Shown: positions 4,042 to 49,110 of the stretch, in pieces
How positions within the stretch are numbered: the first letter of the stretch is position 1
Layout: the number at the start of each line of letters is the position of its first letter
Origin: Bigelowiella natans CCMP2755
Lineage: Eukaryota; Protista; Cercozoa
Direction of reading: 5' to 3'
NCBI GenBank assembly: GCA_000320545.1
Contig: ADNK01001279.1
Span: 91,456 to 155,455, forward strand
Length of the DNA: 64,000 nt
Position numbers and translations under genes: made by a program
The notes under the pieces: generated by a model
The model's database searches: none
What the model was told of the DNA's origin: nothing
The model's input: only the letters and a program-made list of their open reading frames with translations

Positions 4042-5107
4042 TATGAGACGGATGTAATGAAATTATTAAATCCAGCGTATGTATATAAATGCGTAGCTCG
4101 TAGCACCGAATCGCGTTAGATGATAAATCAAGGCATCGCATGCACATGTGTACATTGTTGTCAAATATTGTCGCGGGGGCCTGCGCGGACGCAAGAGACG
4201 CATCACATGCACCGCGATTCAATCAAAGAAACGGATCATGTGCTACAAGCTGCCCTGCGCGCACTCTCAGCATCGCAAAATGAACTGAAAAATTAATTCA
4301 AAGCCATCATGATCATCATAGACAAAATGACAACTATGACAACATCGACACAAAAAGAATTACCAAGGAAGACACGCAGCGGTCGCTCGCGCAGGGGCAT
4401 GGCAGCTCGCGCGGCGCAACAACGGCATTACCTTTGTGAACATGAAACACGTGAGAGCAGATTTTGCACATTGTGACAATGCAGATCAAGAGATATAGAA
4501 ACACAACACAGCCGCTGTAGCCACTACTTGAAGCTGCTTTGTGTGGCTGCATTAGCTAGTTAGGATGGTCATTCAAAATGTTCAATCACAGCATTGCATC
4601 CGTCTCACATTGATCAGACAGCATGCAAGTCCAGCAGCAATTTGAGTGCTGACATGGCCGCATGCAGCGCTGCACAGCTACAGTAGGATCACAATTGGAA
4701 AAAAAAAGATCAATTCATTGCATCCGTTTCATGTACGTGTGTACGTGTGTGTAGAAACATGTGCGTGCATGTGCATGCTGCGCATCCTTCAGGCCTTACA
4801 TGCTAGCTAGCTAGCATGTGTCGCTGTACTCATTACTCACACATCTGCTGTGTACGCAAGCGCTCGCGCGCCGAGCAAGCTGCATGTCATCTAGATACAT
4901 CGAAACAGAGCTAGAGTGTGATAGAGCACTACTATATGCTACCCAATCCATCATTGCCTTACGTAGCAGAAGCTACACAGCTACCAAACGGTAGCCAGCT
5001 TGAGGTGTACAGATTACTATTGCGTACATACATGTGGACGCTGCTTTGCATAACTTAATTAGGATGACTGTTGAAAATTTTAATTTGTTCATTACATCCG
5101 TCTCACA
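4042..5107. mobile_element. Degenerate MITE-like element or cluster bounded by inverted copies of a ~60-bp dispersed motif
   Basis: TATGAGACGGATGTAATGAA at 4042-4061 is the inverted partner of TTCATTACATCCGTCTCACA at 5088-5107. Further diverged copies lie at 4554-4609 and 4676-4733. The interior is non-coding and rich in TGCA/CATG. Confidence 0.5.
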
Positions 5108-5203
5108 CATCTACATAATGTCTAATGTGTGTTATGTCTATTAGGTCACATCTATTAGCACAACACCACAGCCATGCCATAAATATACACCTTAACATGT
5201 GGT

Positions 5204-5919
5204 TCAGTCCTTCTTTTTGTTCTCTGTTCTTTTGATTCCAGCTGCTTCGATAGAGTCAATTATCTCAGTTTTTTTGAAACCTTCAACATGTTTCAAAATT
5301 GCGCCATTTGGATCATAAAGTTTTATTGTTGGAAAGCATTTTACAGGCCCGGCGCCATCTTTTCTCACGTCTAACTTTGAGGCATTAAGCTTCGCAAATA
5401 TGATTTGGCTACCATCGAAATCCTTGTAATACACGAATAAAGTCACTCGACCGAATAAGCCTACTTGGCTAAAGGATACATTAGCACTAAATATTTACCT
5501 TGCTCATTTCTGCATATATCGGGGCAGCAGATCGGCACGGTCCACACCAATCTGCGTAATAATCTACCAAATAATGTTTACCATCTCGCTTGCTCTCTTC
5601 TCGTAGCTGATTCCATTCTTTTTTCGTCTTTATAGCTCTTACGTTGCCGGGATACTCAGGAATTGGCTTTTACAATAACAAATCAATTTCAATAGAAGCG
5701 AGGAACAGTACGAAGAAGGGACTAACCTTACTATTCTTGTACAGATTGAATAGCCTGACAAAATAAGAATGGAAACTTGATTCAGTAAGGAATTATGCAT
5801 TGGTCTTGGTGACAATCTTCTGGTTTTTGTTGTCACACGTACATCCAAATAATAGCAATAACGAGAAGCGGCTTCTCAGATAGGAAGGCCACTAGTGACT
5901 CAACGAACGAAGGTATCAT
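5204..5919 (-). CDS. Thioredoxin (WCGPC) with N-terminal hydrophobic anchor/signal, 4 exons
   Basis: Spliced translation: MIPSFVESLVAFLSEKPLLVIAIIWM-LFNLYKNSK-PIPEYPGNVRAIKTKKEWNQLREESKRDGKHYLVDYYADWCGPCRSAAPIYAEMSK-DFDGSQIIFAKLN...VKCFPTIKLY...VEGFKK...*. It has the canonical WCGPC site and the cis-Pro 'FPT' motif, with an in-frame stop upstream of the ATG at 5919. Confidence 0.9.
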
Positions 5920-6180
5920 GATCGACGATGAGTTCTTCTTTTTCTTCTTTTTCTTCTGTTCCTGTGCTTCGAATTATGACACTTCTTCCAAGCCTTCTCT
6001 GTCCAGATTTGCGAGCACCACGTACGTACTCGTACGTTGTTCCTGCTTTTCTGGATTGTCGCAGGGACTTGATTGTCCTGCATTCATTGCAACGTTCATC
6101 TGTTTATGGGACATTGAGCTCATGATAATATCTTACTAAAAGCGGTTCCATCATCATCATCAACATCATCATCGCATTCC

Positions 6181-6400
6181 ATGGTGCTCTTTGTCAAGAC
6201 TCTAACGGGGAAAACCATCATTATCGATGTTGACCCGCCTGTAACCACATTGCAGCTGAAAGAGAAAATTCAGAACAAAGAAGGGATCCCTCCAGATCGA
6301 TAAGCAAAGGTTGTTGTCCATTCTGCTGGCATTGTGCGAGCGAATCCATGCTTGTGGGATCTGACAACGCACAATGTGAAGCACGTGTAATCGACGAAAC
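6181..6400 (+). pseudogene. Ubiquitin-like pseudogene fragment
   Basis: [39 protein letters not shown] matches the ubiquitin/NEDD8 N-terminus. A 4-nt insertion (GAT-CGAT) causes a frameshift and stop just before 'KQRLL'. The rest is degenerate. Confidence 0.8.
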
Positions 6401-6444
6401 AAACAAGGACATTCTTAGCGCTGTAGCCACCGCATTGCACACAT

Positions 6445-6503
6445 AGCTACATTATTAGGATGACCATTGGCAATGTGCAATTGCACATTTCATTGCATCC
6501 GTC
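6445..6503 (+). repeat. Copy of the ~60-bp dispersed motif (AGCTAC..TTAGGATG..ATTG..TTCATTRCATCCGTC)
   Basis: Aligns by eye with the copies at 4554, 4676, 5059, 26465 and 48546. Confidence 0.7.
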
Positions 6504-7215
6504 ACTGTGCACGCACCAGCCCATCTGCTAGGCCATGCGACGCGCAGCATGCAAGCGGGCATATGCGCACACATTGCATGCACATACTCGAGCATAACAT
6601 CGGAAATGCATGAGGCAGGACATGCAGACACAGACGTGTGACTTAACGCTCTTGTCATGTTGCATGATGAAGCACAATCTGTGGCAATGCTAGCGACCTA
6701 CATGCTAGCTAGCACATGCACACACATGCACATTGCAAACATCTACGCTAGCTGTGCATTCATGTGATGCATCCAACTGAATGACAACGTTACTAATTAC
6801 TAATCTTGCATTACAATGATTAGCATGTTCTGTGGACAAAACATCTATCTGCCTGTGCATGCACCGTGTCTAGGCAAGCCAAATGTTCAATGTGTGGTGT
6901 GTCGCACTTCATTGCTCACTGCACATGCTAGCATGTACATGCACGCTAATATTTGAACACTCTGCTCATCTGTTGTGAAAACAATATAACCTCAAATGAT
7001 GAATGAAAATGACGAGCGGTTGTCGTTTGTCAGAAGATGCAATAGATGCTGTTCTTCCACAGTACACATTCGGCACACGAAATTGCGCCGGATGGTTAGA
7101 TTAGAATTGAAGGTTTTAGGTATACTTGGGGCAAGGAGTTACGCTGGATAGTTAGATTAAAATAGGAAGTGTCAGGAACAATTACTAATTTAAGAGTTAA
7201 TCTGTACTTCAGCAT

Positions 7216-8927: not shown

Positions 8928-10200
8928 GCTGTTGACCACTTCTCTTGTTTTTTCAAACGGCTCCTGTGAAAATGATGACTTGTTTTGAACGGCTGTGCTC
9001 CTAGTTTTGTCTTCTGTCATCAAAGCACTGGGCGCATCTCATTGGAATGTCGAGTGAACACCAATGTTGGTCTTGAGTCTTGATTCACTTCAACGAACTG
9101 AGCTCTGGATGCCTGAGGCATGCTGATTGGGGAGGGTGGAGCGAGGGAGCACACTCCAATGATCCTTTCAGGTCCCCTCTTTGGAATCACTTGCTAGCTT
9201 GTTGCCTGATGTCTAGCCATGCATCGTGTCACTCTGGCATTGATCGAGTGTCAAACTTCACCAGTCTGGCAGTGCCAGAGTGTTTCAACGTTCCAACGTT
9301 TCAGTGTTTCATTTGCTTGCTCAAGGGAAAGTCAGCACGTCCCACGACCCTTTCAACCGCACTTTTGGACAGTGCTTTTGGGTGGCGCCACATGTGAGTC
9401 TTGCATGAACCTTGAGTTTTGCACCGCCAGACCGTTGCTGGAATCGTTTCGGCCACTTTCGTTTGTTCACTTGTCACACCTTGTTGTGACGACGTCCAAG
9501 TGAGCACGACTTTGAACTGTGAACTTCGCCTGCTCACTCACCAGCTCAGCGCATGCCAGTCATCTGGTCACTTGCACTTGAACTTTGTTGTTGCCCACTT
9601 GCTCAATGCATCCCACTCGTTGGCACATCCAGCAGCGTGCCCAACAGTTTTCCCTCTTCTCCGCCCACGTGCAAAAACTTCTTTGTTCACAAACACAAGC
9701 TAGCTCGTTCTTTCAACCAGCTGCACCACTGGAATCAATTCACTCACTCGTTCGGTCACCACGATCCAGTGTCACCAGCTGCACGATGCCATGATGATGG
9801 AGTTGGCACTTTTGACAATTGTCCTTTCAGCTGCGCCGTTGGAATCACTTCGTTCATTCGTTCACCAGCAGCATGCACCACGAGTTGGCACTTCTGGTGA
9901 TCCTTTCAGCCACTTCGCGTTTGAAACCAGCTTCACCAATTCGTGCAATTCGTTCATTGGAAACACTTCACTCATTCATGATGATCCTTCATTGCGGATT
10001 GCCTCATTGTGCATTGACGACATTGCACTCATCGTTGCGAGTGACGGGTGACACGTGCGTGACTGTGAACACAGCGTGTGGACGTCGCTGTGTCCGGCCC
10101 AGAATTGGCGTGCATGCGGGCTCCACAACGAGGGCCATCGTCATCCATCATGTGCACTCATTCTGAGCTTCCTCATCGTAAACGTTCAAGCTCTAGAGCT
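8928..10200 (+). mobile_element. Degenerate reverse-transcriptase retroelement relic (Penelope-like or non-LTR), TpA-erased
   Basis: Frameshifted RT-like motifs in the expected order: 'DDGVGTFDNCP', 'HQQHAPRVGTSGDPFS' and 'SLCIDDIALIV' (YxDD box with Y->C at 10010-10021). No TA occurs except in CTAG. Confidence 0.65.
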
Positions 10201-14600: not shown

Positions 14601-15327
14601 TTCAAATTGCTTTCTATCGTCTGTTCCTTGATGACCGATTTGCTCGAGGCTGCAAGAAGAGAATGTCACTTTGAAAACTACTTGATAGAAACATTTGGGT
14701 GCAAAGATGCCGTCCATCAACTGCCTTGCGTCTGTTACAACCGAGAAAGATTTCTTTGCTTGAGATTCTACCTGATAATCAATGGATGGACGAATAAATG
14801 AATGATGAGACGTCACTGTAATCAAAATATACACATTTGTTACAATCCTCCCCATCCTCCTCCTTCTCCTCCTCCTTCTCAGTGAGGAGTGAGAGGGACT
14901 ACCCCTCCTCCTCCTCCTCCTCATCATCATCATCATAATTACATCGTTACATCATCACTCAGGCACTCAGACAGTCACCTGTACTACTTGTATGAACCAT
15001 GCACTTGCATTGAGATCATCATCATCATCAACAACAACGCTTGAAGGCTCAGAAGAGGACAGCTTAATTCCGAGGAAGAAGTTGGACCATTTCCGTAGCT
15101 TGATGAAAAGGCAGTAGGTTCCCATAAAGGGGTTGTTGATGTTGTTGTTGTTGTTGTTGTTTTCTAAGGAAGAGGAGGAGGAGGAGGAGGAGGAGGAGGA
15201 GGAGGAAGAAGAAGGGGTAGAGCTGCTGGTCCAGTGCGCTGTCAAGTAGCGCGACGTTGAAAGTCCCATACTATCACAAACCTGATTGTTAGTTAGTTAG
15301 TAAGGTAGCTATTTCTCAATTTATCAC

Positions 15328-15363
<36 letters not shown>

Positions 15364-15399
15364 TCACATCAGCTTTGTCTCCTCTCATTTCCGTTATCA

Positions 15400-20600: not shown

Positions 20601-20866
20601 AAGGATGTGTGATGTATCAACAGTATGTAATAACAACAAAATTTTCATTCAAAAACTAAATCGGAACGGATGATAATGAATGAGCGAAGAGAAGCTTTCT
20701 CTGGCATGGCTATTGAATTATTCTATCTCTCGTTTTCAGTTTCCGGGAAAATTGCAACGTATCATGGGATGTAGCTGCTTCTAATTCTTTGTGAGAAATA
20801 ATCGGCAAGGAAGTGATTCTTGCTTGTGATTACGTTGTCTATCTGAACATACCCATCTTATGACTG

Positions 20867-20901
<35 letters not shown>

Positions 20902-21182: not shown

Positions 21183-22024
21183 CACTACACTACACTACTA
21201 CATGATTGTACATGATTAGATAGAGGGTGGTGTATTGACTTATTCTGTTGTTTGGATTCCCGGATCTATCCATCAGCGCTTCACTGAGATCACGCAGTGC
21301 GCTTGCTGTCCGGACGGCCTATTTGGGGGAAAAGGGGGAGGAGTGGGAACACAAAACCCATACGACGATCAAAGACATCGTTGTTTATACCCGACGGCCA
21401 GCGGCAGCAGCGGCAGCATCACCACCACCACCACCACCACCACCACCACCACCAATATCCTTACAGCAGCACCCACCAGCTGCTGCAAAATTCGTCTGAG
21501 CTCGACTTCATGATGCTCATTTTGCCAGGCACCCGCTCCCCTGATCGCAATATTCTTGTGAGGAGGAGAAGGGGAGGAGCAAATGAAGCTTGACGGCAAG
21601 ATAGTGTAGTCGCTTAATCATGATGATGCGCAGAAAGGAGGGCATTTTGATGTGTGCATCATTAGCATGAGGAGCACATGATTCACTTTTCCCTATAGCT
21701 GCGAAGAGGATTTGGGGGGGGATGTAGAGCGCAGCCCCTCTAGGAATAAAGGAATGAAAGAGAAAGACGTTATAGGTTTCATACTGCATTGTCCCCCTGG
21801 GTAGCAGGCTGGTGTGCTTTGTTTGTTCTCCTTTGTAGTAGTAGTAGGAAACTCTCTTCTGTAGTCTTTCTTATATCGTTGTCGTTGTGTTATATCTAGG
21901 TTGTTCCTTGGATGAAATAATGTCTACAATCAGATATGTCAGTTGATGAATGCCTTGTTGCTCGAAATAGATAGATCAACTTTTCATAATTACAAACATG
22001 GTAATATTCGGCTTGAATTATGAA

Positions 22025-23400
22025 ACCACTCAAAAATCTTCGCTGTGTTCTGAAATGTGTTCACTTGCAGCAGCCGCACTCACACCCGTCTTTCTTTGAT
22101 GTTTGTTGAGGCTCTGCTGCGTGCACATGCCTGTCTTCCATGTGGTTCTGGCGCATGTAGTTTTGATCAATGCTTTGTTCAATGTTCAATGTTCAATGTT
22201 CTTGTTCCCAAGTGGTGCAATGGCCTCAATTCCTGCATCATCACCTTGGTTCTGCCATGTGATTTTTTCAGTGATGCGGACGAAGCTGCAACCCCATCGC
22301 AGACGTTCACTGCAGGCGCGACTGCTTCCAAGTTCTTCCTCCCACGCCACTGCACCAACGGCACTCACGCAGTTGTCCAATTCGATGCAGCGATGGGCGT
22401 TTGACACATTCTGTCACAAGTTCTTCCGTGATTTTGCCTTTTTTTGTTCCACCTCTTGCGATTCAAACAGTGCTGGAGTGCACAAAAGCTCTCGCGATGG
22501 TTTTTGCCAAGGAAAGGATCGCCAGCGTGCAACGCTTGTTCACTGAGAGCAGGTGCCACTGAACGCACCAGCAGAGTTCAAGTCACTTGATTGACTCGAT
22601 TTTGTCTCCGCCCACTCGATCTAGCGATCTGACACACTCTGGCACTGAGATCATTGCCTGCTCGCCACCAAGTGATGGTTGACAAATGGTGGCTGCACCG
22701 ACAACGATCTAGCGGCCGACAGCCGACAGACAGCGCAGCACTGTGGCCCTGCCCCCTCTCGCACAGAGCCAGCGCCAGAGCGCATCGCCTCAAAACTCCA
22801 ATTTTTCCACCATCACTAGATCACATTCTCTGGTTCTGTGCGTGCGTGTCTGTGGGGACTTCAAGTCCCTGGGTCCATTCATTTTTCACTGCACATCACC
22901 ACAGCCATGGATGCTCTCGTTTTGTCACACACGCACATTGCACGTGCACACTGAAGATCGTGTCTGTCATTGTTGACCCAAATGACACTTCATGCATGCG
23001 CGATGGAGCAGGTGCGCAGGTGCACACATCATTGCAGGCCACGGTGTGGAAAGCAAGCAAGTGTGACAAGTTGCATGGCTTGAAAACCGCATCACAACAG
23101 ATGCAACATTTTGTGTGTGCACTGCAGTGCACGCTGCTGCACAATGCATTGCAACAAAAAAGTGTCCGTGCATGCTAGCATGTGCATGTCGTTTTGATCG
23201 CATGTGCATGCGCATGAACAAAGTCAATGCGGAGTCTACACGGGCAATGCATGTTTTGAATGGTCTAGGCACAGTGAAAGCCGCGCACCTAGCCACACAC
23301 ATGCACACGTGCGACACATGCTGCGCACATGTGACGCACTAGCGCAGCGATGCATGCACGCTATGCACACGCACGTTCTTTTGTCATTAGCGCAGGCCAT
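22025..23400. mobile_element. TpA-erased repeat/transposon relic, possibly with a DNA-transposase fragment on the minus strand
   Basis: About 1.4 kb in which TA survives only in CTAG plus one each of GTAG, CTAC, CTAT and TTAG. Overlapping ORFs are Tyr-free and Cys/His-rich. The minus-strand 'RESFCALQHCLNRKRWNKKRQNHGRTCDR' weakly recalls a transposase C-terminal ESF...KR segment. Confidence 0.45.
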
Positions 23401-26328: not shown

Positions 26329-26464
26329 TAATATAGGCGAGCCATTTGCATATTCACTTTATTCACGTGCGAAAGATCAGATCAGAATGATCTCTCAGAA
26401 ATCGCGCATTTGAACCAGTTACACTACCACTGCTTCATATCATTATCCTGGAGTTGCTAGTGAT

Positions 26465-26521
26465 TATGAGACGGATGTAATGAAATGATTACAATTTTTC
26501 AATAGCCATCCTAACGTAGCT
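26465..26521 (-). repeat. Least-mutated copy of the ~60-bp dispersed motif
   Basis: The reverse complement reads AGCTACGTTAGGATGGCTATTGAAAAATTGTAATCATTTCATTACATCCGTCTCATA and keeps all its TA sites. Confidence 0.75.
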
Positions 26522-26987
26522 ATGCGAAGAGGCGGTTAAAGCTAGTGATTATAGATCCTATACAATGGGCTATGTACTGCGTGATAGATCGTACGATCAA
26601 TGAGTGCTGGCGCCTTAACGCACCAATCTTCATGCATATGTCAGATGCTATGGTACGTGACACGTACCTAAGTCGACGGCAGCGCGCGTCAAATGCTCAG
26701 TTTTTGTTTGAAACGCTTAGCTCATCCTATATCTACTCGTTCAGAATGTAGCAACGTACGATACGCGCGTGTATGTGTATTAAATGCAAAGTCACGTGCT
26801 AGCTAACCTCTTCCGTGACTAAATAGAGGTACATCTTAGTCGCTATGGCATGATACGCCGTACTGTGATGATATTTGTAGGATCGATGATTACGGTAGGT
26901 GGCACGTGTGGTTAAGTACAAGCAAGCGTTGCTGGCTCGAACAAGTAGTACTTCGTTTTAGGACACAGAATAATAGCCTCCATCATA

Positions 26988-36699: not shown

Positions 36700-39050
36700 A
36701 TCGAACTCATGTGAGTTTAAGTGCGCACATCATGTGCGCTTGTGTTGTCACTGGCCGCCGTTGATCAGCATAGGTGACGATGCCAAAATGAATCTAGAAA
36801 TCACCGCGGATGTCTAGAAATTGTGTCTAAATGTGTTTGTCTAGTTGTGGGCATGTATGCGCTGCTCAATGTTCCAGTCATTGTTCGCGTTGTCATCACA
36901 TGTACCCCCCCACGCATCAACACGTCGAGATTCTGAACGTGCAGCTTCCGTCAAACACCTAGCGCAAGAACCCTAGAGAGCACTGAAGAATGTATCAATT
37001 AGTTCCATGTTGGAGACAAAGTCACAATCATTCGAGAGCTCCGTCACAATTGATTTTCATTCATGCATGCTGCACGTTGGACACTCTCCAGACTCCAGTT
37101 AGCTAGCACTGCTGGACTAGGCAATGTGTAAGCTAGCAAGGCTAGAAGGTTCTGCAAAAGTTGTTGGCATTTTGCATTGTTGCGATGTGAAGCCTCGCAA
37201 TGTCATGCATGCTGGCTAGCTGGCCTGTCTCCAACTTTTTTTCTGACATGCAGATTCCATTGTCGCAATTTTGAAACGTCCACAGAAATGGTTCAGGCCT
37301 GTCACTAGATCGCATTCTTTGTGTCTGTTGTGCTTATCCAAAGATTTTTCTTTGTCATCTCTCTGATTGTTCACAGTTGCAATGATGTTGCACGATTCTT
37401 GAATGGAGACAACAGATTTGTCATGTCCCTCACTTGCAATCGAGCCCTCTCATTGTTGTTGAAATCTTCCACACATGGTCCTCTGATTCAGCACAACAGC
37501 CTAGCTAGGGGGGGATCATTGCGATAATGATGACTGGGGTGTTCATTTTTCAGCAAAGTGGAGCCCTTTTCGTCATCTTGAAACCCCTTTCCCCTTCATT
37601 CGCACACACAAATGGTGGAAAGAACTTGAGATTTGGCATTGTTGCTCACGCGATTGTTGACAACAGTGGGGGAAGAAGCTGTGGCTAGGAAGGGGGGTTG
37701 TGTCAGTGGCGGCAGCGCAGAAACATCACCAAAAGTGATTTGTCGCTTGAAAAAAGACTCAAGCGTTTGCATCTCAGCACAAATCTCAAGTTCAGCAAGA
37801 ATGGTCTCCACGTGGAACATCAAGTGACAACGTGAACAATCCCAAACAAGAAAGTGCATCCTGTGCCTGAAGCTGCTCAAAACCTGTCACAGGGATGAAG
37901 GCACACACCAAACTAGCAAATGCGAGTTGAGGCTGCATCCTGGCTACATCACCGTCATGCGACATGGATTCCTTTGAGAACAATGAGAATCAACACATTT
38001 GTGCATGGAACACAGGGAGTTTGGTGGCCACATGGCAAACGACAGATTTCACGTGACTAGCTAGCTAGATCTAGAGATGAAAACGACATGCCAGCATGTT
38101 CGGACCAAAATGGACGAAAAAATGTTGAAAAATGAGAGGATTCACATTTGTCACACCTTTCTTGACGGCATGGGGATCACACGTGTGCCAGTGTGGCCTG
38201 CACGTCCACACGCAGATGTGTGCACGATGCATTTTGTTGACAACCAATGATCTCCACTCTTTTGATTCTTTCATTCAAGTTTCTTCATCTCTCTCTCTGA
38301 TTCTCTCACTTTGCTCCCACTCTCTGCCCCCCCCCCTAGCCCCCCCCCCCCGAGCTCGTCATTTCAAGTGTAGTCTTGCTGTCACGGAGTCGAACTTGAG
38401 CAAAACAACACGTGAACTGTGCGGTTTGATCCGGCCTGTCTCGTGGCTGTCAGTGGCTGAAGACGAATTGACGCCGATCTTTGCTGCAATCTGTCCCTCA
38501 TTGTGAACGATGAAGACAGCTCCCAGATCTAGGACACTAGCTAGCTAGCTAAATGGCTAGGTCACAATGATCTAGTGATGGTTTTTCCGTCAGCAAGCCC
38601 AGCTAGCCTGTGAAAAAGTGGCGGAAGATGCAATGATCGTCCATCTTCCCCATCTGTCTGCAATGGAGCCCGTTGCCAATGAGCACAAAATGTCAATTCA
38701 TCATTCGGTTCACGCGGAGATTGCCCTAGCTGTCTAGCTGTAGCTAGCTGCTAGTGCCGAAATTCTGTGTGAAAAGGGAAAGCTAGAAAGGGGTGTTTGA
38801 GGAGGTGGCACGCACGGTGTTCCTTCATTGACAGCCCTTGCGCTAGCTGTGGCTGTTGACACTGCACACAAGATGCATCACGCACATCAGATATCTAGAC
38901 ATCACTAGATCATGCTGCAGCGGAGACAATGACTCAAACCCTCAGCATGCGTCGTCTCTCCACACTAGCACAACAGAGGAGATCAGAACACCACGTGCCT
39001 TGCTGCATGTGTGCACGCTAGCACGCGCAACGCCAAATAACGAATTTCGT
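36700..39050 (-). mobile_element. Degenerate LINE-like relic (ORF1-like and APE-endonuclease-like remnants), TpA-depleted and CTAG-rich
   Basis: Minus strand ~38370-38530 reads 'IAAKIGVNSSSATDSHETGRIKPHSSRVVLLKFDSVTAR', resembling the LINE ORF1 'R.G...PR.vlvkF.s' motif. About 37720-37750 reads 'QITFGDVSA', resembling the APE 'GDFNA' motif. TA is nearly absent outside CTAG. Confidence 0.45.
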
Positions 39051-48370: not shown

Positions 48371-48545
48371 GGAAGTAGCAGCTCACTCTCGGTATTAGTA
48401 CATCTGGCAATTAAAGTTATTAGCAGCAGCTAGGGGATGGATGCTTTGTTGGATTAGCAGTAGTAGTTTGTGGTATGCATCTTCACTTCATTATTCAATA
48501 TAGCATTCACTTCCTCCTCTGCCCCTTCCTCTTCGTTATTGTAAG

Positions 48546-48604
48546 TCGGATGTAATTACTCAGTTATACAATTAAATTTGTTCAATGGACATCCTTTTGT
48601 AGCT
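48546..48604 (-). repeat. Diverged copy of the ~60-bp dispersed motif
   Basis: The reverse complement reads AGCTACAAAAGGATGTCCATTGAACAAATTTAATT...ATTACATCCGA. Confidence 0.55.
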
Positions 48605-49110
48605 ATAATGCGATATGTTGTCTCACATTGCCTCCTACTTCGCATGCGCATGGGTGCATTTTTCAAGTTCAACGTTCATTTGTTACTTTGTCTATTCTAG
48701 TATTTGCTACGCATTGAAAATCACAACAATTTGCACGTACTGAAACTCATAGCTGGATGGCGTATAATCGCACACACATGCATCTACGATGTAGACATGC
48801 CTGGCATGCCATGTGCAACGAGCAATCTGACAGTAACATCGATGCACTGCTAGCTCCTACTGTTCTGTATGTGATTACACACAATCGATACTATGGTAGG
48901 CAATGCCATGTCTAGATCTATGCCACACGCACACGCACGAGTACATTACGTTCATCATGTCTGCTAGATATGGCGTTGTAGTTCAGGATGCATGCATTTC
49001 AATTGACAATGCTTAGAATGACTAGATGAATGAAGCATGGAGATATTAGATTTCACGCCTTAATTTATAAATGCAGAGTAAAATCCTATAGATGATATTA
49101 GTCTTCTTAT

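Follow-up and report, generated by a model that had tools for sequence, protein, structure and literature searches.

TA-specific A:T>G:C hypermutation recorded in LINE copies and their scattered 3′ tails in Bigelowiella natans

The closest described counterpart of the sequences analyzed here comes from the same organism. In a mutation-accumulation experiment with the cercozoan Bigelowiella natans, Mettrop et al. (bioRxiv 10.64898/2026.01.13.699255, 14 April 2026) found that 230 of 231 de novo mutations in two integrated viral regions were A>G or T>C, all of these falling on TpA and turning it into TpG or CpA, and that mutation rates in the hypermutable viral regions were about 1000 times the background. 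The same preprint reported TpA-depleted coding sequences (CDS), among which reverse transcriptase (RT), endonuclease-RT and DDE domains are overrepresented, and it proposed an ADAT2-like adenine deaminase. No other relevant literature was found in our literature search. Here we describe a dispersed motif in a 64,000-nt stretch of strain CCMP2755 (assembly GCA_000320545.1, contig ADNK01001279.1, positions 91,456 to 155,455 of the forward strand; this whole stretch is called the window, and positions are given in its own coordinates). The motif is the 3′ terminus of a non-long terminal repeat (non-LTR) retrotransposon, or long interspersed nuclear element (LINE), whose copies elsewhere in the genome were analyzed as well. 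As in the viral regions, the changes in the LINE copies are A>G and T>C only at TpA, occur on both strands of foreign DNA and are independent of CpG. In contrast to the present analysis, the preprint measured de novo mutations in insertions of nucleocytoplasmic large DNA viruses (NCLDV) and virophages and made use of composition statistics, without a comparison of LINE copies and without flanking context. TpA-specific hypermutation is already known for B. natans, and what we add are details only: copy-by-copy polarity, saturation of 95–97%, random resolution at each site, slow conversion of CTA and TAG, inheritance from source elements, and open frames that lack tyrosine. The LINE copies supply hundreds of independent polarized events, a ranking of contexts and a record of either-strand resolution site by site.

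Repeat-induced point mutation (RIP) of fungi is likewise a dinucleotide-specific transition hypermutation that acts on both strands, destroys mobile elements and marks tracts by their skewed composition. However, the C to T changes of RIP, mostly at CpA, generate TpA and stop codons and reduce the GC content, whereas in the LINE copies TpA is lost, GC rises from 0.44 to 0.50, no stops arise and near-identical repeats can remain untouched. Mammalian APOBEC3 proteins acting on retroelement cDNA also leave deaminase-type hypermutation recorded in retroelement copies, but they attack the cytosine of minus-strand cDNA and so give G>A on one strand, whereas here adenine is changed on both strands equally and after integration. 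A TA-specific A:T>G:C mutator directed against foreign DNA would be an unusual genome defense, the chemical opposite of fungal RIP, and may point to a natural DNA adenine deaminase. As for the element itself, LINEs of the stringent type, such as those of the L2/CR1 kind, have a conserved 3′ tail that is recognized by their own RT. The LINEs of B. natans resemble them in having a 3′ tail common to two families whose bodies are 67% identical, in lacking poly(A) and in often being followed by a TA-rich microsatellite. They differ in that the open reading frame (ORF), which has a C-terminal Cys/His motif, stops 25 nt before the end of the element; that the RT recognizes the tail is something that we only infer.

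The motif was identified as the 3′ end of a LINE of about 3.9 kb, encoding an endonuclease and an RT, because a frame with both domains runs into it, because its copies are truncated at variable 5′ positions and because one of them is flanked by a 12-nt target-site duplication. It contains the final 17 codons of a single ORF, the TAA stop and an untranslated region of about 25 nt that ends in CTCATA. Two long copies have 3.9 kb in common, and the 1173-codon frame of one long copy, which continues into the motif, matches PF14529 Exo_endo_phos_2 (E 7.6e-13) and PF00078 RVT_1 (E 1e-08); the endonuclease, carried by the same element as the RT, is of the apurinic/apyrimidinic (AP) type. Copies on other contigs end at a common 3′ boundary (...CATCCGTCTCATA) and extend upstream by variable lengths (422, 473, 497, 513, 583, 599, 707, 868, 990, 1030, 1235, 1266 and at least 1890 nt). 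The perfect 12-nt duplication surrounds the window copy at 26465, the only copy examined for one. The 3′ end carries no poly(A); a (TA)n-like microsatellite follows several copies and is absent after many. An earlier note on this window had described a unit of about 60 bp, and this length needs revision, since the real unit measures 78–110 nt or more and is the end of a longer element.

Two other classifications were dropped. Reading the copies as short interspersed nuclear elements (SINEs) arose from an apparent 405-nt unit, which turned out to be the truncation point of the query itself; further upstream the copies still align, in register, and run into the LINE ORF. A miniature inverted-repeat transposable element (MITE) or hairpin based on GGATG...CATCC was rejected as the ORF passes through the motif. 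The copies do not form a defined short unit with a 5′ end of its own (a tRNA-like head or terminal inverted repeat), as SINEs or MITEs would.

The conversion of TA was seen most clearly in full-length copies, which were found by a protein search of the genome and, where mutated, were compared base by base with unmutated sisters. LINE copies are bimodal in TA content, with a few intermediates. Copies of the unmutated kind have 62–64 TA per 1203 nt, 14 tyrosine codons, a GC content of 0.44 and a 1179-codon ORF, and are 99.6–99.9% identical; at least 11 of them hold this identity over 3.5 kb, with 150–156 TA each. Copies of the mutated kind have 0–4 TA per 1203 nt, no tyrosine, more cysteine and histidine, and a GC content of about 0.50. 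Relative to unmutated sisters, 55 of 161 TA sites (34%) were converted in the copy designated L072, 145 of 153 (95%) in L073 and 151 of 155 (97%) in L082. L072 differs at 74 positions, of which 55 are TA>TG (31) or TA>CA (24) and 10 are transversions; outside TA, it shows A>G at only 3 of 1072 and T>C at 1 of 638 sites. In L073 and L082, 0–5% of A/T in other contexts and 1–5% of CpG were changed, and CpG observed/expected is still 0.66–0.76 in copies that have lost all TA. C>T at CA was found at 2 of 328 sites in L072 and at 9–11 of 320 in the saturated copies; TpA was lost, not gained.

The two outcomes were equally frequent in full-length copies. TG:CA was 74:67, 70:69 and 30:23 in three mutated copies (pooled 174:159, P = 0.44), and a runs test detected no strand-coordinated conversion tracts of the kind seen in APOBEC clusters (z about 0, −1.9 at most). 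Conversion does depend on the neighboring bases, for the 10 TA that escaped in the two saturated copies are without exception part of CTA or TAG, and in the slowest context class, CTAC/GTAG, 30 of 49 sites were unchanged. It is also regional within a copy. L072 was converted in its 3′ half only, relative to sisters 99.9% identical to it. L073, L082, L077 and L074 have normal TA in the 3′ flank, so that their converted domain stops within the last ~400 nt; conversion in L078 and L056 passes through the tail and at least 300 nt further into flanking DNA that is not LINE.

These comparisons support the direction of change proposed in the earlier note, TA to TG or CA, as intact copies have TA where their mutated sisters have TG or CA. 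They likewise uphold TA as the target and the symmetry between strands, and the tendency of TTAGG and GCTAC to survive, noticed from a few window copies, agrees with the slow CTA and TAG contexts.

The same preference was found in the short tails. The tail alignment covered 125 unique tails out of at least 1,367 in the genome, and genome-wide pattern counts were used besides. In the alignment, transitions occupied 222 of 1507 TA cells versus 122 of 4018 cells with other A/T (P = 2e-50), and 6 of 532 at CpG. In three young groups, where changes were counted as differences from the group majority over the last 405 nt, 51 of 401 TA positions had changed versus 30 of 3687 other A/T positions, a 16-fold excess (P = 2e-32), and transitions affected 5 of 762 CpG versus 29 of 2809 other C/G positions. 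This per-site comparison confirms that TA mutates faster than other sites, and that CpG transitions are not elevated, as expected if the process is independent of CpG decay. At the site on which the earlier note had focused, the genome holds 677 copies in the TA state (CATTACATCC...), 146 in the TG state (CATTGCATCC...), 138 in the CA state (CATCACATCC...) and 1 in the CG state (CATCGCATCC...). TG and CA are balanced (146:138, P = 0.68), in line with symmetry between the strands, and CG occurs 0–2 times per TA site among the 125 tails. The virtual absence of CG (1 of 962) excludes a CpG ancestor and indicates that sites once converted are not hit again.

Whether copies were mutated independently could be read from a second family. 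Two of its mutated copies, 86% identical, have 95 adjacent double differences at which one has CA and the other TG. At these 95 sites six further long copies split 40:34, 36:46, 35:40, 18:19, 17:14 and 34:21, a roughly even division indicating that each copy was mutated on its own after divergence and that the outcome at each TA was random. Three shorter copies (L033–L035) followed the pattern of the long copy L051 at 29:3, and the 3′-most 389 nt of L051 recur unchanged in another copy with a different truncation point; together, these two observations indicate that some mutated sequence was copied again. The active family has CATCACATCC and CTCACA in its own tail, and intermediate states occur in its older copies. 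To judge from these sequences, source elements themselves have lost TA over time, and some TG and CA states of the tail have been passed to daughter copies.

Taken together, the change arises in DNA after insertion; it is specific to TA, falls on either strand, is independent from site to site, is blind to CpG and is regional within a copy. We assign a probability of roughly 0.88 to the full reading, in which LINE 3′ tails were scattered by 5′ truncation and then exposed to a DNA-level A:T>G:C process acting only at 5′-TA-3′. Target-primed reverse transcription would leave many 5′-truncated copies with a common end, and hence short tails that are scattered and often clustered. After insertion, a DNA-level process would change A:T to G:C at 5′-TA-3′ only. 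TA being self-complementary, TG would result from a hit on the A of the top strand and CA from one on the A of the bottom strand; each site would be resolved independently, about equally often either way, and a changed site would cease to be a target, so that CG would almost never arise. TA within CTA or TAG would be converted slowly, long copies could reach 95–97% saturation while short tails would be hit much less, and some TG and CA states would have been acquired in source elements and inherited by their daughters. The enzymatic step may be the one proposed in the preprint, an ADAT2-like deaminase converting adenine to inosine, which the following round of replication would read as G.

Several observations weigh against this reading. 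In the seven window tails alone, transitions affected 13 of 83 TA versus 14 of 215 other A/T positions, a 2.4-fold difference with P = 0.022, and the same tails carry about 10% transversions, so that TA-directed changes make up a minority of their differences. TG exceeds CA in the 3′-terminal 400 nt and in copies that consist of 3′ parts only (41:10 in the young groups; 38:20, 34:22 and 29:11 in family A), so that a strict balance of the two products is a feature of whole elements only. One site has TG in three window copies, and at four tail sites TG recurs in five unrelated loci; the counts therefore exceed the number of independent events. Comparison of tail conversion with copy length, made at the level of classes, is confounded by TG and CA inherited from the tail of the active family. 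The claim of the earlier note that mutation targets TA accordingly stands at the level of the family; for the window copies by themselves it is weak, and part of their variation is inherited.

A first alternative is neutral decay combined with subfamily structure. By this account the window copies are old tails descended from different source elements, and TA, TG and CA are diagnostic variants mixed with random substitutions, no process specific to TA being involved. The transversions of the window tails, the predominance of their differences outside TA, the CATCACATCC and CTCACA of the active family's own tail, the TG states shared by five loci and the 29:3 agreement of L033–L035 with L051 all fit it. 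Nevertheless, we consider it improbable, and for the family as a whole it is contradicted, as it leaves unexplained why nearly all TA were converted in saturated copies versus 0–5% of A/T elsewhere, why private changes of young copies show a 16-fold TA excess and why copies resolve the same sites independently at 50:50; moreover, TA sites account for almost all of the differences between subfamilies. Decay of CpG, with CG ancestral, methylation-driven deamination yielding TG or CA, and TA as the product of double decay, would likewise place TG in one copy and CA in another at a single site. It is practically untenable, because CG is nearly missing both at the focal site genome-wide and from the 125 tails, because the youngest, near-identical intact copies have TA, and because CpG shows no elevated transition rate and is retained in copies devoid of TA.

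The remaining alternatives concern where and how adenine is altered. If an ADAR- or ADAT-type deaminase preferring U before A edited LINE transcripts, reverse transcription would fix A>G. Known RNA editors have a similar preference for T before the altered A, as also stated in 10.64898/2026.01.13.699255, and both the inheritance of some variants by daughter copies and the excess of sense-strand A>G (TG) in the 3′ 400 nt would follow. We nevertheless regard RNA-level editing as very improbable: editing of sense RNA could not give TG and CA in equal numbers on the sense strand of full-length copies, L072 is mutated in its 3′ half only although its sisters are 99.9% identical, conversion enters non-LINE flanks in L078 and L056, and the changes were seen to arise de novo in integrated single-copy DNA (10.64898/2026.01.13.699255). 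APOBEC-like editing of cDNA was rejected, since it acts on the wrong base and would affect one strand only. A homology-triggered process like RIP, in which duplication in itself would be sensed and would lead to mutation, is favored by three points, namely that the targets are repeats, that saturation is found in the longer copies whereas short tails largely escaped, and that the preprint itself draws the analogy to fungal RIP (10.64898/2026.01.13.699255). However, duplication is not sufficient, as at least 11 near-identical full-length copies have stayed unmutated; the main target in 10.64898/2026.01.13.699255 was single-copy, and the chemistry is opposite, A:T>G:C at TpA and not C>T at CpA. 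We therefore give this process a low probability, slightly below that of neutral decay.

A bolder extension, which we regard as possible but unlikely, is that targeting is set by the element itself and not by mere spreading, being guided to internal sequence (for example by small RNA or transcription), and that the tyrosine-less LINEs live on as non-autonomous elements that parasitize the active family by way of the common 3′ tail. The first part would account for converted domains that end within the last ~400 nt, with the tail and the TA-rich 3′ flank spared (L073, L082, L077 and L074), or cover the 3′ half only (L072). The second is suggested by lineages with TA-free bodies and intact tails that are still copied, as shown by the 389 nt of L051 and by L033–L035.

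Returning to the DNA-level conversion of TA, its footprint in the window is likewise regional. TA observed/expected is about 0.8–1.1 in most 1-kb bins and 0.07–0.21 in three tracts; this division into TA-poor tracts and normal bins, like the bimodality of the LINE copies, matches the confinement to foreign or mobile DNA described in the preprint. The tracts lie at 9001–10000, 22001–23000 and 37001–38000, with 4, 7 and 15 TA per kb (observed/expected 0.07, 0.12 and 0.21) and an excess of CA and TG. When these tracts (~9–10, 22–23 and 37–39 kb) were searched for LINE similarity with blastn and tblastn, only the tails were found, indicating that other element families are hit too.

The conversion has a particular consequence for reading frames. 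The only possible products of TAA are TGA and CAA, and TA>TG or TA>CA turns no other codon into a stop. Since the process cannot create stops, open frames exceeding 1000 codons survive in destroyed copies, their tyrosines turned into cysteine or histidine. The 1173-codon frame mentioned above has three tyrosines, all near its C-terminus, and its RT core is free of them. The same lack of tyrosine in the RT core was seen in open frames ranging from hundreds to 1173 codons in L052 (87–3605, reverse strand), L053, L056, L073, L076, L081 and L082. Such tyrosine-less "zombie ORFs" can be predicted as genes, which is a warning for annotation, and they probably account for many of the "TpA-depleted CDS" of the preprint.

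Other observations concern the families to which the copies belong. The at least 11 near-identical copies (L057–L067; contigs C2167, C908, C2179, C3306, C3676, C1129, C3064, C515, C2494, C2903 and C2133 of our numbering) mostly have an intact 1179-codon ORF, and their near-identity together with the intact ORFs indicates that the family was active recently and has so far escaped hypermutation. Two of these unmutated young copies, L063 and L065, lie in TA-free DNA, the 600 nt after the element end having 0–4 TA per 300 nt versus 13–18 expected; new insertions therefore land in old hypermutated islands while themselves unmutated. Families A and B (represented by L059 and L023) have nearly identical tails over the last 80 nt and bodies that are only about 67% identical, and most of the tail differences are at TA. 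A tail common to two LINE families suggests that it is the part recognized for reverse transcription.

Within the window, each motif string quoted in the earlier note was found at its place by direct reading and a 20-mer search. Direct reading located the quoted strings at 4592–4609 and 6489–6503, CTGTTG at 5068–5073 and CCATTG at 6464–6469, and the 20-mer search placed the motif at 4714–4733 and 5088–5107 and, on the reverse strand, at 4042–4061 and 26465–26484. With up to three mismatches the 20-mer had four matches in the window versus 0.03 expected from shuffled sequence. The 11-nt core CATCCGTCTCA occurs 703 + 664 = 1,367 times in the 91.4-Mb assembly, versus 3 + 8 = 11 occurrences of its reversed control. 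The CpG of ATCCGT, which the earlier note had described as preserved, is intact in every window copy; among the 125 tails its C position reads C in 113 and T in 0, and its G position reads G in 110 and A in 1.

A search with the tail profile (nhmmer) found seven copies in the window. On the forward strand, a diverged 5′-truncated LINE 3′ fragment of about 390–465 nt, identified with the tail profile and whole-element queries, occupies 4147–4610; its tail part, 4480–4609, reads CATTGCATCC...CTCACA, and TA is low and TG plus CA high over 4200–4800. Also on this strand are tail copies detected by both the 20-mer and profile searches, one of about 100 nt at 4632–4734, which reads TG at the CATTACATCC site and ends in CATG, and one of about 77 nt at 5033–5109, with CTGTTG and a terminal CTCACA, as well as a 3′ fragment of about 170–200 nt found by profile searches at 6305–6505, which lacks the last few nucleotides of the tail and reads CATTGCATCCGTC. 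The reverse strand holds a 32-nt terminal fragment in the unmutated (TA) state at 4042–4073 and a tail copy of about 85–107 nt, also in the TA state, at 26465–26571, both from the 20-mer and profile searches. The latter served as the reference copy of the earlier note, and a repeat search placed its 12-nt target-site duplications at 26456–26467 and 26541–26552. A further diverged copy, which the earlier note did not list, was found by profile searches at 48542–48656 on the reverse strand.

The tails are clustered, five of those in the window lying within 2.5 kb (4042–6505), four of them in the same orientation. Same-strand pairs of tails 50–110 nt apart are numerous genome-wide (for example C243:30112/30170, C392:79292/79399, C436:22099/22196, C445:7221/7269 and C478:15270/15381), where the average is about one tail per 67 kb. 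This clustering suggests insertion beside earlier tails or into their microsatellites. Several tails (4733–4800 and 6505–6700 in the window, and the 3′ flanks of L067, L075 and L079) are followed by runs built from CA, TG and TA, such as CATGTGCATGTG, which resemble former (TA)n microsatellites with their units altered one at a time. Trinucleotide microsatellites (ATC, TAC/GTA, GAG, CAA and CAG) are very abundant on both strands, many of them within open frames, for example at 1369–1417, 15320–15372 and 20866–20900.

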